Below, one piece after another: positions 4,271 through 42,059 of a stretch of 64,000 nt of DNA. The notes beneath the pieces were generated by a model. It ran no database searches. It was not told the origin of the DNA and saw only the letters and a program-made list of their open reading frames with translations. The stretch is from NCBI GenBank assembly GCA_965112155.1, contig OZ218106.1. The stretch is one strand, 5' to 3'. This DNA comes from Podarcis liolepis (taxonomy: Eukaryota). The position numbers were made by a program, and so were the translations under genes. Positions within the stretch are counted from its first letter, which is position 1. Every line of letters begins with the position of its first letter.

Positions 4271-6487
4271 CTTTAGTGGGGCATCTCCTAAGCTCTGGAA
4301 CTCCCCATCCACTGAAATTAAGGAACCACTTTTGCTGTCTTCTTTTTGGCACCTGCTAAGAACTTTCCTGTTTAGGAAAGTCTACCTAGACATGTAAAGC
4401 TGACACATATTTTGATATATATATATTTTAAAAATCAAACAGTCAGACTATTTGCAATAAGGAAAGGGGTGTGGAATAACATTTGCTTTGAGGGAGCATC
4501 ACCTAACCTCCTTACAAACAAATCAGAATGACTGATTCTAATTAAATATCTCATTAAATAGTGCATAAATGACAGGGTGAATGCTCAATAAACAGCCCAT
4601 CTTGAAGCACCTGCAATTATTATTTATTAATTTTATGAGCTCTTGTGCTCAGGCGATGCTTATGGGATTCCCACAAGCATCTGCTTGGCCACTGTTGAGA
4701 ACACGATGCTGGAGTAGATGCTATGTTAAGGTGAAATATATGTGAGATTACCTGTTCTGGATCTTAGTGTAGGCTGAAGGGACACTTCAGTTATTTGCCC
4801 TTCTGTTTGCATAATCAATAAAACTATACCAATCCACTCCCCACAAAACAAAACAAAACCCAAGGTGTAATTGCATTTCTGTCCTATTAATGACTCGAGG
4901 AAGTGCCCACAATTCTATAACCAGGAGCTGATCCTCTGGGAAGCAGGGAATTCTCTATCCAAGCAAATGGAGATGCTAAACTGATTCTTCTCAACAAGAA
5001 ACAGCCACCCATTGCTTAGTGAACAGTGGCTCTTATTTTTGCCTTTCTTTCTGCCTTTCTTTCCTGGCTGACTTCAAGTTGGTCCAGCTTGGACTGATAG
5101 GTATTGGTACAAGGGAGGCATGGTCCCATCAGCCTGAGTCTAGGGAAAAGGGAAAAGCGATTTATATGTGTTCTATATGCGACATAACATTGTGCCACCA
5201 GGTGGCAATGTGGAGCCCCGTTTTTCTCCACCTGTTTTCCCTGTTTAAATTTATAGCGCTTTAAACTGAAACGCTTCTTTGATGTGTTTAGATCCAGCCT
5301 AGGACTCTTTTGGGATTTCAGAGTTCTGTGGGGGGGGGGATGGTAACTGAATGGGCAGCCATTGAATTTTGTTATCCCTGCTTTGTATCTCTGGCTGATT
5401 TACACATTCATGACCAAATTGTTGTCTTTTGCGCTTTTGGAACAATGGAAAGCAACGTGGAGGGGCCACAAACTGCCTCAGCATTAGCTTTCCATTCCTC
5501 AAGAAGACTAAGGAGAGGCAACGGGGGACACATGTTTATACACATTTTCAAAGCATTTTTATTTATAGCAGCTAATATGTACTTTGGCTAACCCTACTGT
5601 AATAATAAAGAGGGGGGAAGCTGGGGTGGTCTTTTCTCACACAAAAGGAGAAGTTAATTGGCTGTGTTCACCGAAGAGTGATGTGCTCGGCAGCAGTTCC
5701 ATGCTAGTGAATGGAAAAGCTACAAAGACAAATGAGCTGGACCTCAGGATGGGGGTGGGAGTGGGAACCCAGAAAAAGAGGGAGTAGGGGCTGAGGTGGT
5801 GTGAAATTGGCACTGGTACTAAACGAGAACGAAGTTAAAATGCAAACTTGAAATACCCTTAGCAACACTACCCTTTAAAACAATCATTGCAGTTATTTTC
5901 AGCCAGGACTGCTGCTTTAGGTAGTCATAGCTCTCTCTTTCTCTCTCCTTCTTTCTACAAGTATAGTTAAATAGCTCCTAATCCAGGAAAAAAACATTGT
6001 TAAGATGGAACAGTTGATGTATTTGTGATCCCCCCCCCAATTGTAAGAATAATTATTGGTAAAGTCTATCATTCCCTGACCTAGCTGCCTGATGGGAGTT
6101 GTACCCCAAAATGTTTGGAAGGTACCAGTTTCTGGAAGGGTGGTCTAGTTTGAACCTTTATATTTGGATATATACAAGGCATTTCTGAAAATTCCACCAA
6201 TTGTCACACCAAAGAACTATTGATATGTCCAGAAGATTATGGGGACCTTTGCTAATGGGCCTCTCTGGAGCACCATTGCAGAGCCTTGGTCTACTGCTGG
6301 AGTCCCTTCCTTGTATCATAAATTACGTTAATAGTATCAAAAAGATGAGCTCCGCTGTGCTATTTCCCTGTGCAGAGAGAATGGCGTGCTTTTCAGAAAA
6401 CGGCTTGAAGCAGTAGCTATTGTTCGTGGTTACCCCTCTTCTCTTGCAAGTCTTCTAGAAGACTCAGAAAAGGCAAGGAGCCAGGCT

Positions 6488-33525: not shown

Positions 33526-33786
33526 CAGTGGACGCTTGGGTTGCGAATGTGATCCGTGTGGGAGGCACGTTCGCAACCCACAGCATTCACAACCCACAGC
33601 GCCGCGTCTGCGCATGCGCAGGTCAAGATTCAGCGCTTCTGCGCACGCGCAAAGTGCAATTTAGTGCTTCTGCACATGCAAAAGCGCCGAAACCCGGAAG
33701 TAACCCATTCCGGTACTTCTGGGTTCAGCGCGGGGCACAACCCGAAAACACGCAACCTGAAGAGTCTGTAACCTGACGTATGACTG
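33526..33786 (+). mobile_element. Tc1/mariner-type MITE, family B
   Basis: TA|CAGTGGACGCTTGGGTTGCG...TGACTG|TA; inserted into a (TAA)n retroposon tail. Confidence 0.85.
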
Positions 33787-33941
33787 TATTATTTATACCC
33801 CGCCCATCTGGCTGGGTTTCCCCAGCCAATTTGGGCGGCTCCCAACAGAATATTAATAATAATAATTAAAAAGTGATAAAACATCAAACATAAAAAATTC
33901 CCTAAAGGCCTTCAGATGCCTTCTAAAATTCAGATCATATA

Positions 33942-36587: not shown

Positions 36588-37585
36588 TTTATGTCTATAT
36601 GATTGCTTCTGTGCTCTTGCTGCATAAGTGCAGATAAAGAACATGTAGTGATATAGGCTTGTAGTTCAGCATGGGGTTGTCAGCTGTTACACATAAAAGT
36701 CTAATCTGAATCAGCTGCTCATAAGAAAAACAAATCTACATTCTGTCACAATGAAGGAAAGGTTAGTTTTGGGTGTGACTGTACTTTTCCACAGTAACAA
36801 GCAAGGATTAGCACACCTGATTTTACTGCACGGTGATGCAGTAAAAACAAACAAAAACCCCTCCTTAATTGCAGTGAAATCTGTTTCTTTTTGGGAAACA
36901 CAACACCTTGAAAATGAAGGGAAATTAAAGGGAAATGTTGGAGAAAATATTACTTGGATTATGTTTGCATCTTGAAACTGGTGCTCTCATGGAACGGTCT
37001 TGTTCTGAGTCCATCGGATCAGCCACCATGCAAGCTTTTTGTAGGTTTCAATATAAATTCTTAAAGCAAACTAACAGAATGCGTACATTTAGGGCAAAAC
37101 TACATGATGTGAGAAAAACAGACCTGCTCCTAAGATGTGTTGGGTTGTCCCCCTTCTGCCCGACAACGTATAATAAAAGTTGGCCTGATGCCATTGTTCC
37201 ATTCCTTATGGCTCAGTTCACATTTAGAGTACCATGTTCAGCTCCAGGTTTCTGAAAGATGGTGACCAAATTGAGAGTGTCCAGAGGTGAGGAGCCAAGA
37301 TGCTGAGAGGTATTTAGACTAAAATCAAGTGCAGTATTTAAAGTGCAATCAAGGTAGGCAGTGGGGTGTGATACAGCACAATGGAGCGACCTCTACTCTA
37401 CTCTGGCAGCCCCAATGCTCAAAGCAGCTGGAAGGTGGAAGAGTCAGGCAAATTGCCATGCCAGCCTGGAGCCTCAAATCAAGTCTGATGTTGTCAAATG
37501 ATGGAATTGATCCAAGGCCACTTTAGCTCATCCCTGCTCCCACACTGTCCTATTTTGAGGCTTTCTGCAGGCTACCACAGGTGTG

Positions 37586-37811
37586 CAGTGGTACCTTGGG
37601 TTACAAACACCTCGGGTTACAAACACTTTGGGTTACAGACTCCGCTAACCTGGAAGTAGTACCTCGGGTTAAGAACTTTGCCCCAGGATTAGAACAGAAA
37701 TCGTGCGGCAGTGTGGCGGCAGCAGGAGGCCCTATTAGCTAAAGTGGTACCTCAGGTTAAGAACGGTTTCAGGTTAAGAAAGAATTAAGTTCGTAACCAA
37801 AGGTACCACTG
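37586..37811 (+). mobile_element. Tc1/mariner MITE, family A
   Basis: CAGTGGTACCTTGGGTTAC ... GTAACCAAAGGTACCACTG|TA; left flank TG instead of TA. Confidence 0.87.
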
Positions 37812-37954
37812 TACTTCCATCAACCCACATACCTGTGAAGTAGCAGAGGAGTCACTCCAGGAGTGTCAGCTGGCGGGGCTAGGTGGTAACACAACTTCAT
37901 TCAATCTCCCCACCACACATCTAATGGGATTTGGGTTGCAACCAAAGTCCTATA

Positions 37955-38310
37955 TGGACTGGGTATGTTTAACCTGGAGATGAAAGTGGTCTTTAAATAT
38001 CTAAAAGACTATCATGCCAAAGATGGAGCAGGCTTGTTGCCTGTTGTTCTAGTGCCCAACTAGAATCAATGGTGGATAATGGCAGGGAAGCAGACTGTAG
38101 TTAAATGTTAGGAAAGACTAGCTAATGGTAAGAGCTGTTCAACAGTGAAATAGACTCCTGAGGTGGCAAACTCTCTTTCTCTGGGGATGTTTAAGCAAAG
38201 ACTAATTCATCATTGGTTGCAGACACTGTAGTTACACCCTTGTTACAGATCATGCATTGACAGAGATTTGGAGTAGATGACCTTCCAGGTCCTTCCAGAT
38301 TCTATGTTCT
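37955..38310 (+). mobile_element. Old CR1 3' fragment (upstream piece at ~37215-37320)
   Basis: GGGTATGTTTAACCTGGAGA...TTTAAATATCTAAAAG...GTAAGAGCTGTTCAACAGTG...TAGATGACCTTCCAGGTCCTTCCA...TTCTATG. Confidence 0.72.
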
Positions 38311-38600
38311 ACAACTCATTCAAATACAGATTGCAACCATAAAATAGAAAAATCCTAAGATACAATCAAACAACTTCAAAAGGCAGTAGGAATGCGAATA
38401 CCTCAGTTCTGAAAGTTTTTAGGCAGCTGTGGTTTAATGTAGCTCCATTCAGGGACGTGCCAGACTGAAATGTTAATGAGAATATTTGTAGTCTATGATG
38501 GAAGAAGTTGCATTGCGGTTCGAGGACCCGACCCCCGTGTGGTGAAATAAAGACACAAGGACACGTGATATATGGTTAATGGGCAAGAAAAGGCCACAAC

Positions 38601-38606
38601 TTTATT
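38601..38606 (-). terminator. Polyadenylation signal AATAAA of the element
   Basis: CCAATAAAGTTGTGGCC followed ~45 nt later by GT/T-rich GTGTCCTTGTGTCTTTATTT; a second AATAAA at 38658-38663 lies inside the structured domain. Confidence 0.6.
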
Positions 38607-38911
38607 GGTTACAGCAATGAAAAGGTATTGGCTTAGGCATTGGATCGAAGCAAGTGGTTTATTCACCAGTAGGTGGAGCCTGTCGATGCTAATCCGACTC
38701 TAGGCTCACCCCTGTTGTCACCGAGGGTCGTGCCAAGGCCTCCCGCCAAGCAGGCATCGGACGGAATACACGACCCCCAGATTCCTTTAACGGAATACCC
38801 CTAAAACATTGAAGGCATAGGCGATGGCCAAACCTAGCACTTCGACACACCACAACACATTATTCCAATGCCTAACCGCCACCCGAGCCAAAAGGCTCGC
38901 CGCCAATACCC

Positions 38912-39484
38912 TCACTGCTGCAACCAATCCCAGATGCTTTTGCTGACACTAGCTAGCCAAATGTCGTTCCCCGAGTCCGATAAGTGAACGCCATCATTCC
39001 GGTATAGAGCTTGGTCGTTAATACGGATACGATCATGCCGGATGACACGGCCAAACATAAAGCGCACCCAACGGGCTACCGCCCGATTTACGAGTTTCCT
39101 GGTTCTTTCAATGGCCAAACAACTTTGCGCACCGCGCCACTCAATTCTTTTCAGGAAGGAGGACCAGAAAACCGTCGTTCTGGGGCACAAGGCTGCCAAT
39201 GCATTCAAGTCTCTTTTTATGCTCCCCAACAAGTCTGCACTCTTTCTGCTGGTTAGGTCATTCTCTCCCAACTGTATCACAATAGCGTCGGGAGGGCCAA
39301 AGTTGGCTACTTTCTCCCGCAGCAAAGGCATCAGCTCTTCCCATCGCATGCCTCTTCTCGCAAACCAGGAAACTCGGACATCATTTGGGAGGCCAAGATT
39401 AGGTGCCAGGCCGCATCTTGCTGCACGTACGTGGGCCCAATGAACAATACTGTGGCCACAGATCCACACATTTCTTCTGAGCAA
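38912..39484 (-). CDS. SGNH/GDSL hydrolase (esterase-like) ORF of the YR retrotransposon
   Basis: Block I VWICGHSIV (Ser), block II RRGMRW (Gly), block III QLGENDL (Asn), block V NDGVHLS (Asp/His); 190 open codons; starts at TTG just after a splice-acceptor consensus. Confidence 0.92.
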   Translation of the reverse strand: MLRRNVWICGHSIVHWAHVRAARCGLAPNLGLPNDVRVSWFARRGMRWEELMPLLREKVANFGPPDAIVIQLGENDLTSRKSADLLGSIKRDLNALAALCPRTTVFWSSFLKRIEWRGAQSCLAIERTRKLVNRAVARWVRFMFGRVIRHDRIRINDQALYRNDGVHLSDSGNDIWLASVSKSIWDWLQQ

Positions 39485-39486
39485 AG

Positions 39487-39523
39487 CTAGGGGTAAAGAC
39501 AGAGAAGACGGCAGGTAAGTGAG
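39487..39523 (-). promoter_or_regulatory. Predicted 3' splice acceptor of the hydrolase ORF
   Basis: Minus strand: CTCACTTAC (branch-like) CTGC CGTCTTCTCTGTCTTTACCCCTAG|CT TTG CTC; phase-1 entry. Confidence 0.7.
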
Positions 39524-39543
39524 GCCCAGCGACTGGTCGCGTA

Positions 39544-40344
39544 CTAGCGAATGTAAGACTTATAAGCATTAGATCTCCACCGGCCCATCTCTTTGATCCT
39601 ATCCGCTGGTAGACCTAAGTGCGCAGCCGTGGTTGCGGCACCAATCCTAAAAGAGTGCGCAGCGTACTCCTGGGCAGATAGTCCACAGGCCTCGATCGCC
39701 TTGCGCAGTACTCTGGTGAATTGGTATCTCAACATGGGCGACCCGTCCTCATGAATCAAAAACGGACCTGGGCCAGGTGGCCTAAGGTCGAGATACCGCC
39801 TAGTGTCCTTTACCGGACATGGGCCCTGCTGTGTTGACGCTGAGAGTTTGATCAGGACACCCTTGCCAGCCTGATCGGTCTTGGACTGTCGTATGAGCAC
39901 TGAAACGGAAGAGCTAGACAGCTGCACATCCTTGCAAAGGAGTCCGTGGTTTGAACCCCGTGCACTAACTTCAAACACAACCTCCCCAACCCTCAGTGCG
40001 CCAAAAAAGGCGATAGCATATGCTGCAGAAAAAAGGCGTGCTTCGAATCTGGACCAGCAAATCAACCTGAGTTTTTTGCGAATTTGAGACAACAACCCGT
40101 AAGAAATCGGCTTACGGCCTTCGTCCCTGGGAGGCTGTAACCTGCTCCAACCCTCGATTGCCCTACGTATCATGAAGTCGCTACACGGGTCATGAGCAAA
40201 TGTAGCTTTTGAAAAGAAGCTGATAGCTGCTACATGAATCTTTAAAGTTTTTGGGGCACGTCCCAGGTCGTCGAGATGTGAAAGATACTGCAAAACGTCA
40301 TTAGGAAAGATAACTTGGTTTTGGGTTGTACCAATGTACCTCAA
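39544..40344 (-). CDS. Tyrosine recombinase (DIRS/Ngaro integrase), N-terminally truncated, no start ATG
   Basis: Catalytic motifs FFGALRVGE (R), RQSKTDQ (K), CPV, HSFRIGAATTA (HxxR), MGRWRSNAYKSYIR (W,Y); 266 open codons; track start codon is TTG. Confidence 0.93.
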   Translation of the reverse strand: MRYIGTTQNQVIFPNDVLQYLSHLDDLGRAPKTLKIHVAAISFFSKATFAHDPCSDFMIRRAIEGWSRLQPPRDEGRKPISYGLLSQIRKKLRLICWSRFEARLFSAAYAIAFFGALRVGEVVFEVSARGSNHGLLCKDVQLSSSSVSVLIRQSKTDQAGKGVLIKLSASTQQGPCPVKDTRRYLDLRPPGPGPFLIHEDGSPMLRYQFTRVLRKAIEACGLSAQEYAAHSFRIGAATTAAHLGLPADRIKEMGRWRSNAYKSYIR

Positions 40345-42059
40345 GACTAAATGAAAAGAAGTATCATGGAAGTCATAGCAGTTTCTAAATATGCAATTCT
40401 GAATCTAAATGCTGAGATCAGATGGTTGCATGTGATCTGCTTGCCTGCCTGTATCTGAGTTGTGATGAGACTACAGAATATGTGCATATAGCCCTCAAGC
40501 CTCAAGGAGATACTGTCAGCAATAGAACACTGGCAAACAATGCAAATTCAGTGAGTAAGGTGAGAGGTCAAGTTGGTTGTGGGGGGAAAACCCAACCATA
40601 CAGGATTTGGGAACAGGAGGAATGTGTGCTGTGCAGGTAGACAAAAAGAAAGTTAAGCAGATATTTTAAGTCCTGCCTATCTAGTTTAAGCATCTATTTC
40701 ACCAGAGGTGGGGTTTTTTTGGAAGGCATTTACTGTATTTCCAACATAGTGTGTATTGCCTGTGTTTTAAATATTCTGGAGTCTTTCATGTGGTGGTGGT
40801 AAAGTCTCCCCATCAAATTTATTAAAAAAATTAAATTCCATACCTTGCCAGCAATTATTTTTACAGGACGCAAGACTCATTTTAGAGACCTGTTATAAAC
40901 CAATCTGAAAATATGGCTTTATAATGGAAAGCAAGAGAAACCTTTAATTGGTGCAGTGTTAGTGAGCACTGTTATGACACTGAGCCCATCCATAGGGTAA
41001 GACTTTCCTGTACAGTTCTGCTGACTATACACCTGCTCGGTCAAATGCACTCTGAACAAAATGTCAAAGAATTTCTTTTGACTTAACGATGTTTAATCTT
41101 TTTTTTTTAATCTGTGTGGCCTCCGTATATGATTCTGGTACATGAGTTATACATATAAGTGGAGAAATGATAAAAGATGAGCAAAAACCACTGGCTAGGA
41201 AGTATTTTCTGCTGATGTATTAATTCATTTCATCTCATACGTGGTATCACCATCAAGGCTAACTAGATTTTATGAGTGGAGTCACTGAAGTGAAAATCAA
41301 GCCAATGAATCGTTTAATATGAACTAATGAAGACCAGATATAAAAGGCTTTAGTAACTGGTTTGGTACTTTAATTGTCAGGCTGATGGAAATTCAGAGCC
41401 TTCGTAAAGTAAAGCAGTGGGACTACAGAGGAGAAAGTGGAATCGCTTCACGATAATTGGTTTTAATTAAATAGCCTTATAAACAGCTCTGGTTTATGTA
41501 ATGTAAGTGCAAAAGGAGGAGTTTTTCAAGGTAAAAATAAATTGCATTTGCAAAAGGTTATAAGCAGGGCAGAGACCACCGTCATGTTTGCATTTGAAAA
41601 CATTTCTCTTTTGCTTATCACAACTAAGAACCTAATTAATGTTGCCTGGCTTCTATGAAATAAAGTAATCCTGCGGGGGTCTGAATAAAAGGATAAATAC
41701 ACCATGCTGAACAGCCCATTCTCCAGTGCAGAATTCAAAATTGTTGACTGCTGAATGTCCCCCCTCCTCGCCATCTTTAGAGCCTTCATATATTTTGTTG
41801 AATTCAAGGGATTTCTGCCCAAGTTGAGAAATGAAAACCTTCTGTCTCCTTACTCTATTAATCTTTCATGGTCCTGTGTCCAATTACCCACACATGCATC
41901 CCACTGTGAAATAATGGGGTTGTTTCATGTCCAACAAATGCCAGGATTGCTTCCTTGGAGCCTTTGAATATTAGGAGCACCACTACCTGTTGCAGATGAT
42001 CCCCCAAAGTGTTACTTCAAGTCCATTTTTTAGGTGTCTGGGTAATGTCTGTTTGGATT

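Follow-up and report, generated by a model that had tools for sequence, protein, structure and literature searches.

What is the segment of about 290 nt with complementary ends that lies beside a hydrolase reading frame in the lizard Podarcis liolepis, and does it matter as RNA or as DNA? The window analysed here is a stretch of 64,000 nucleotides (GenBank assembly GCA_965112155.1, contig OZ218106.1), and all positions are given in its plus-strand coordinates. A first-pass annotation, made from the letters of this DNA, had drawn a multi-stem domain at 38624-38910 between a hydrolase stop codon and a poly(A) signal. A cis-acting RNA or single-stranded DNA element was suggested, with an unrecognised ribozyme among the options. 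What stands of this interpretation is a closed structured domain, beyond chance, that belongs to the 3′ untranslated tail of an element of the Ngaro type. The ribozyme reading gained no support.

On the minus strand, YR and GDSL/SGNH hydrolase ORFs lie directly upstream of the structured domain (Table 1). In Ngaro elements of vertebrates, the YR is followed by an additional ORF for an SGNH/GDSL hydrolase (PMC9210276), and from this shared arrangement we assign the element to the Ngaro type. Homologues of the hydrolase, 97 to 44% identical overall, all come from squamates, mostly Podarcis and other lacertids, the lacertid ones spanning 97-48% identity. Neither Gag nor RT/RNase H was found in this copy, and no further Ngaro protein similarity was detected anywhere in the window. 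Searches of the window by blastn, by arm patterns and by tblastn with 17 proteins returned no further copies of the domain. The split direct repeats of Ngaro have the order A1-ORFs-B1-A2-B2 (Goodwin and Poulter, as far as relayed in PMC9210276 and PMC8547959). No such A1 ... B1 A2 B2 arrangement was found here; a single unit is present, with no internal direct repeat in the window. The copy is cut off 5′ at about 40346, inside the recombinase region, and unique flank begins at 38513. Since RT, gag and the A repeat are missing and B is single, we regard it as a truncated or collapsed derivative, and the missing Gag and RT read as truncation of a family member rather than as another kind of element.

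Table 1. Features of the structured domain and of its host element. Positions refer to the plus strand of the window; the sense strand of the element is the minus strand.
Feature	Position	Strand	Description	Basis
Distal repeat B	38514-38603	-	Part of AATAAA; predicted cleavage region (poly(A) site predicted from the sequence); GU/U-rich at about 38545-38565; unit end at 38514	
3′ arm (sense) of closing helix	38604-38644	-	Three CCAAT	Pair table and folds
Variable interior	38645-38863	-	P3 at about 38669-38714, P4 at 38721-38780, P5 at 38781-38796; remainder weakly structured	
5′ arm (sense), inner half	38864-38875	-		Complementarity script and pair table
26-nt insert within 5′ arm	38876-38901	-	Carries the CGAGCC-loop-GGCTCG hairpin, 38884-38899	
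5′ arm (sense), outer half	38902-38928	-	Stop codon at 38912-38914; probable 5′ edge of the high-copy unit	
Outermost helix as first listed	38624-38632 / 38902-38910		GGTATTGGC / GCCAATACC, perfect Watson-Crick	Script check
Inner closing helix	38633-38644 / 38864-38875		TTAGGCATTGGA / TCCAATGCCTAA, perfect Watson-Crick	Script check
Side hairpin	38884-38889 / 38894-38899		CGAGCC / GGCTCG, perfect Watson-Crick	Script check
Long-range 6-bp helix	38645-38650 / 38840-38845		TCGAAG / CTTCGA, perfect Watson-Crick	Script check
P3 helix	38672-38681 / 38702-38710		GGTGGAGCCT / AGGCTCACC, one-base bulge	Script check
P3 inner pairing	38682-38685 / 38695-38698		GTCG / CGAC	
P4 core helix	38725-38732 / 38769-38776		GGGTCGTG / CACGACCC, perfect Watson-Crick	Script check
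P5 helix	38781-38785 / 38792-38796		ATTCC / GGAAT, perfect Watson-Crick	Script check
GDSL/SGNH hydrolase ORF	38912-39484	-	190 codons, no ATG; Pfam Lipase_GDSL_2, E 1.2e-6	
Tyrosine recombinase ORF	39544-40344	-	266 codons; Pfam Phage_integrase, E 2.3e-4, a weak match (21.4 bits against a curated cut-off of 27.1)	

The complementarity of the proposed stems was checked with a script. Every helix that had been claimed is present at its position, six of them as perfect Watson-Crick pairings, and the sequence ACGGAATAC is found twice, at 38761 and 38790. The domain had been placed just after a TGA and shortly before AATAAA. This is correct on the minus strand, where the 287 nt start right past the UGA (plus 38912-38914) and stop 16 nt ahead of AATAAA (plus 38602-38607); as a plus-strand statement it fails, the sense of the element being minus.

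An excess of folding energy over shuffled sequences, the check that the first-pass annotation had itself named, was observed on both strands. For 38624-38910 (287 nt), the minimum free energy was −106.8 kcal/mol on the plus strand (z −6.57) and −123.0 kcal/mol on the sense strand (z −4.10), and in neither case did any of 200 shuffles do as well. Most of this signal is carried by the closing helix. Without it, the interior at 38645-38863 folds with −80.0 kcal/mol on the sense strand (z −1.48, 18 of 200 shuffles as good) and with −67.6 kcal/mol on the plus strand (z −2.92, 1 of 200). Folded singly, P3 (about 38669-38714) and P4 (38721-38780) each gave a z of −3.3 and each were better than 199 of 200 shuffles, with z −2.4 for the CGAGCC hairpin and −1.9 for P5; the single-hairpin shuffles showed no significant folding in the rest of the interior. 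No excess over chance was seen for the 6-bp TCGAAG/CTTCGA helix, which is disrupted in relatives by indels and a 9-nt deletion. The claim that so many compatible helices would not arise by chance holds for the closing helix, P3 and P4, but was overstated for the interior.

As a local control, 41 segments, each of 287 nt and taken from 33.6 to 43.9 kb, were folded. Segments in the Ngaro ORFs gave z values of −1.5 to +1.9, thus about 0, so that the folding excess is confined locally to the tail of the element. One other control segment, at 33624, was equally extreme (z about −7) and is unrelated to the Ngaro domain. This segment, 33624-33910, is GC-rich, contains short palindromes (gcgcatgcgc, and a ttcgcaaccca inverted repeat at 33537-33580) and has a z of about −7 on both strands; it does not resemble the Ngaro domain and is probably another repeat element. 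A little downstream of the Ngaro fragment, at 37583-37814, tandem 16-nt units (ACCTYGGGTTACAAAC) and 25-26-nt inverted repeats look like a separate hairpin-forming repeat (z −4.6 on the minus strand).

The closing helix is real, but it had been drawn too short. Wider folding of the sense strand showed that it runs 17 bp further past a 2-nt bulge, pairing plus 38604-38620 with 38912-38928. The chance of a 17-bp run adjoining an existing helix is about 0.375^17, roughly 6e-8. Counted on the sense strand, the interrupted closing helix has 39 bp, in which plus 38604-38644 is paired to 38864-38875 and 38902-38928, and it closes a domain of about 325 nt. The extended domain, 38599-38930, folds with −152.1 kcal/mol on the sense strand (z −7.50) and with −125.4 kcal/mol on the plus strand (z −7.93). 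P4 grows on the sense strand as well, from 8 Watson-Crick pairs to 13 bp via G·U pairs. The final five and two-thirds codons of the hydrolase ORF, with its UGA, fall in the 5′ arm, and the 3′ arm terminates in AAU, the first three bases of AAUAAA. Lacertid homologues with as little as 48% identity still end in the C-terminal DWLQ(Q/L/V)-stop of the hydrolase (38912-38935). These C-terminal codons, which also form the outer closing helix, may be under a double constraint.

The extent of the repeated unit was read from one RNA run and from DNA contigs and runs of three organisms (lizard samples). At 38514 the single-copy flank contigs of all three organisms end and the depth jumps by orders of magnitude. 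At 38928 similarity is lost in a contig of single-copy depth, and in each of the three DNA runs the bin 38916-38959 has about 13/44 of the depth of the bin beside it, which fits an edge near 38928. The flank ends and bin depths together delimit a repeated unit at about 38514-38928 (about 415 bp), and the extended helix ends just at the 5′ edge of this unit. Summed over 38520-38915, the depth is 10-100 times that of the hydrolase ORF in the three organisms, a ratio that is not a copy number. Thousands of gene-less copies carry the structured unit. From position, abundance and edges we identified the structured domain as the core of repeat B, one of the split direct repeats of Ngaro.

As in Ngaro repeat B, the lizard unit directly follows the last ORF, which is an SGNH hydrolase as in amphibian Ngaro, contains a poly(A) signal and is far commoner than the genes, comparable to the solo AB repeats of Cafeteria. 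It differs in size, since repeat B of Xenopus has 152 bp, against about 415 bp here, and in that the lizard copy has one B and no A. An excess of copies over genes can also be obtained by recombination-made solo repeats, which are known for Ngaro in Cafeteria (PMC8547959), and can stem from 5′ truncation, too. The structured module is family-wide in a known type of element and new as a described feature. The searchable literature, mostly in non-subscription journals, holds no description of a secondary structure of repeat B or of a structured 3′ domain in YR retroelements, which within this scope bears out the supposition that the domain had not been described for this group.

Three further observations concern the copy itself. 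Its other end lies exactly at the repeat edge at 38514, and the read depth of the family climbs toward the sense 3′ end. Copies truncated at the 5′ side are a poor match to integration of a closed circle by the recombinase; incomplete linear cDNA, which is discussed for DIRS-1 (PMC7192593), fits better. At 39238-39600, contigs of two of the organisms (B and C) have roughly single- to few-copy depth and 2-7 differences in the ORF region; the sampled lizards may thus have this insertion, or one nearly identical to it, in common. The hydrolase ORF also carries a 20-nt inverted repeat (39085-39104 / 39363-39382), which is 90% complementary with its arms 258 nt apart.

Relatives of the unit retain both arms while the interior is replaced or shortened. 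In one RNA form, 38644 is joined to 38861 via 33 unrelated bases, and one contig skips 217 of the bases that separate the arms. The side hairpin is missing from one subfamily (loose end at 38877), and the length of its loop differs among relatives (deletions at 38890 and 38893). Among the best-supported differences listed in the domain, a selected subset outside of which there are another 219 substitutions and 9 indels, the only change in a solid stem is 38696 G>A, and the indels are located in loops. The A at 38696, which is the family majority, would form a G·U pair on the sense strand and a C·A mismatch on the other strand if the partner is unchanged.

Conservation of the arm sequence fits a protein-binding DNA site equally well as an RNA helix. 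The first-ranked rival is an inverted repeat that works at the DNA level without any RNA role, the fold being a by-product of the palindrome. Variants of this explanation are NF-Y-type CCAAT promoter or enhancer boxes of the B-A junction, accessory sites of the recombinase, or fixation in repeat B of an ancient MITE-like insertion. From subfamily to subfamily both arms retain their sequence while the interior is replaced, and each arm carries three ATTGG (or CCAAT) pentamers, compared to a density of 1.9 per kb in the window. The z values are equally strong on both strands, −7.5 for sense and −7.9 for plus, so that thermodynamics does not favour the sense strand, and they are equally strong under DNA parameters. 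Even the unrelated palindromic repeat at 33624 reaches a z of −7. On the other hand, no target-site duplication is found at 38624/38910 (AAAA against CTCA), which argues against an insertion of the MITE kind. The 17 bp past the perfect repeat need G·U pairs, a property of a single strand and of the sense strand, and a bulge as well; the 26-nt hairpin splits one arm; and P3 and P4 each beat 199 of 200 shuffles. Three pairs of the 39-bp helix are not Watson-Crick; each is a G·U pair in the sense strand and would become A·C in the opposite one. G·U pairs number 14 on the sense strand and 3 on the other strand, a count that is confounded by the G+T-rich sense strand. On balance, we consider a DNA-level origin of the fold unlikely, though it is the strongest of the competing explanations.

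RNA reads cover the domain to a depth of 30-40 in one orientation and of 3-4 in the other (about 10:1), the library type not being on record and the sense assignment following the usual convention. Most of the RNA reads are less than 90% alike and hence derive from other copies. Together with the G·U pairs that exist on the sense strand only, the strand-biased RNA weakly favours RNA over DNA. At 38591-38643, about 270-300 RNA reads have the orientation opposite to the remaining coverage of the domain. They match only these 53 nt; to the left and right of the match they run into a single, well-defined sequence that is unrelated (agreement 0.96). This fragment of repeat B, consisting of the 3′ arm and the AATAAA region, has been incorporated into an abundant transcript from another place in the genome.

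The position of the helix foot at the poly(A) signal raises the possibility that the structure regulates polyadenylation. As the AAU of AAUAAA is base-paired to the beginning of the 5′ arm, the foot would bury part of the signal, and B1 would be read through while B2 is used. The A1-ORFs-B1A2B2 scheme indeed needs read-through of B1 (PMC9210276, PMC8547959), and past the predicted cleavage site the RNA depth stays at about half (16 versus 27-36) up to the unit end. However, the extension of the 5′ arm seems to lie within the repeated unit (edge at 38928), so that B1 and B2 would be masked alike; we have down-weighted masking of the poly(A) signal for this reason. Only one B is present in this copy, in which a contrast of B1 and B2 is invisible. 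We rank this explanation third among the rivals and judge it improbable.

Ribozymes are known in retroelements such as Penelope-like elements and R2, and a compact multi-helix RNA in a retroelement might be self-cleaving. The interval 37000-40500 was compared with the Rfam covariance models, and no family was matched on either strand at E values up to 1; the classes without a match in this interval include hammerhead, HDV-like, twister, hatchet, pistol and the retroviral cis elements. The first-pass annotation had already noted that a hammerhead core is missing, and CTGANGA (CUGANGA in the RNA) is indeed absent on both strands. In the one RNA run, there was no position where many molecules start or end, at a coverage of only 30-40. 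Additionally, the would-be catalytic interior is the least conserved part of the domain. A self-cleaving ribozyme is thus hardly credible.

Other origins were considered as well. No tRNA-like head, as expected of a SINE, was found. A search for the arm motif in metagenome, viral and prokaryote-genome collections gave 126 loci, all of them chance matches, and blastn of the domain against them gave matches of 28 nt at most. These collections do not contain lizard DNA, and two of the chance contigs, named 'human gut metagenome', are microbial. A protein-word search with a spurious 54-codon ORF of the interior revealed no translated copies.

Structured 3′ ends of template RNAs have precedents outside the YR retroelements. 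LINEs of the stringent type have 3′ tail stem-loops in common with their partner SINEs, such as UnaL2 and UnaSINE1 of the eel. Passengers that keep the 3′ structure of the template are a classical sign of cis recognition by an RT supplied in trans. The lizard domain resembles these tails in being a structured 3′ end of a template RNA that is kept by non-autonomous passengers. LINE hairpins, however, comprise a few tens of nucleotides next to a terminal repeat and serve target-primed reverse transcription, whereas the lizard domain is closed, has about 325 nt, lies upstream of the poly(A) signal and belongs to an element thought to be integrated by a recombinase. Among YR retroelements, the only precedent in the searchable literature is DIRS-1, for which Poulter and Goodwin suggested that a 3′ hairpin at 4792-4805 primes reverse transcription (cited in PMC7192593). 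Both structures belong to the same order of retroelements, both are positioned at the 3′ end of the RNA, and both pose the question of how the first strand is started. The DIRS-1 hairpin, on the other hand, consists of 14 nt at the very 3′ end, while the foot of the lizard helix precedes the poly(A) signal and therefore cannot provide a 3′-OH itself without processing.

In simple retroviruses, the constitutive transport element forms a long stem with imperfections. Both of its arms contain repeated motifs, and it follows the last ORF and precedes the poly(A) signal. By analogy, the lizard domain could be a nuclear export or stability element for unspliced genomic RNA. Both the transport element of Mason-Pfizer monkey virus and the poly(A) hairpin of HIV-1 are RNA structures that lie in this interval or surround the poly(A) signal itself, in retroelements with identical terminal signals. 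The location between the last stop codon and AAUAAA and the long stem with symmetric repeated pentamers on both arms agree with this comparison. In contrast, neither sequence nor Rfam model similarity to known transport elements or to the HIV-1 hairpin is seen, and the lizard stem has hardly any imperfections and lacks the internal loops to which export factors bind. A differential masking of two copies is unsupported in the lizard element, and the retention of the arms in ORF-less copies is left unexplained, except as part of the repeat. An export role, which we rank second among the rivals, therefore appears doubtful and is assigned a low probability.

A further analogy leads to single-stranded DNA. 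In the integron attC site and the attP site of CTX phage, paired boxes are conserved, some bases are unpaired and the terminal structure varies. In a similar manner, a folded single-stranded cDNA might serve as substrate of the tyrosine recombinase of the element. The conserved arms with a variable interior are compatible with this idea, and the plus strand, which has the sense of the first-strand cDNA, folds with a z of −6.25 under DNA parameters, with the three G·U pairs becoming mismatches. DIRS-1 reportedly amplifies via linear single-stranded cDNA (PMC7192593), which provides a precedent. The end of the element at 38514 is, however, 90 nt outside the helix, and the crossover point would thus be located outside the arms. 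As an explanation of the domain in its own right, a recombinase substrate is very improbable.

Our preferred, still tentative reading is that the domain, as the folded core of the lacertid Ngaro repeat B, a 3′ untranslated and terminal-repeat module, acts as a cis RNA handle; it would probably be a signal needed for copying the element. That RNA rather than DNA is the active form, and that its job is recognition for reverse transcription, we infer from the evidence above. The RT and/or Gag of the element, acting in trans, would bind the closed helix, each arm of which bears three ATTGG/CCAAT repeats, and recognition at the 3′ end of the template would select the template or start copying. Recognition by trans-supplied proteins would account for ORF-less relatives that keep the arms while the interior drifts. 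On the other hand, the interior alone barely beats shuffles on the sense strand, which counts against an RNA handle. The RT of DIRS-1 acts in trans, and no primer has been identified there (PMC7192593). A more specific proposal, to which we give only a minor share of belief, is that the B domain is either the initiation site of the RT, which would act in trans on the 39-bp helix, or a folded single-stranded cDNA substrate of the recombinase. As an initiation site, it would offer ORF-less A-B elements a signal to parasitise, much as SINEs do with LINE tails.

If the structure should instead be a palindrome at the DNA level, it would be only an annotation detail of repeat B. As an RNA signal, it would have wider meaning. 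With its conserved arms and its retention by gene-less passengers, the B domain is a concrete and mutable candidate for the signal by which YR retrotransposons start reverse transcription and choose their template. The structured domain is, moreover, a prospective marker of non-autonomous Ngaro derivatives in squamate genomes.
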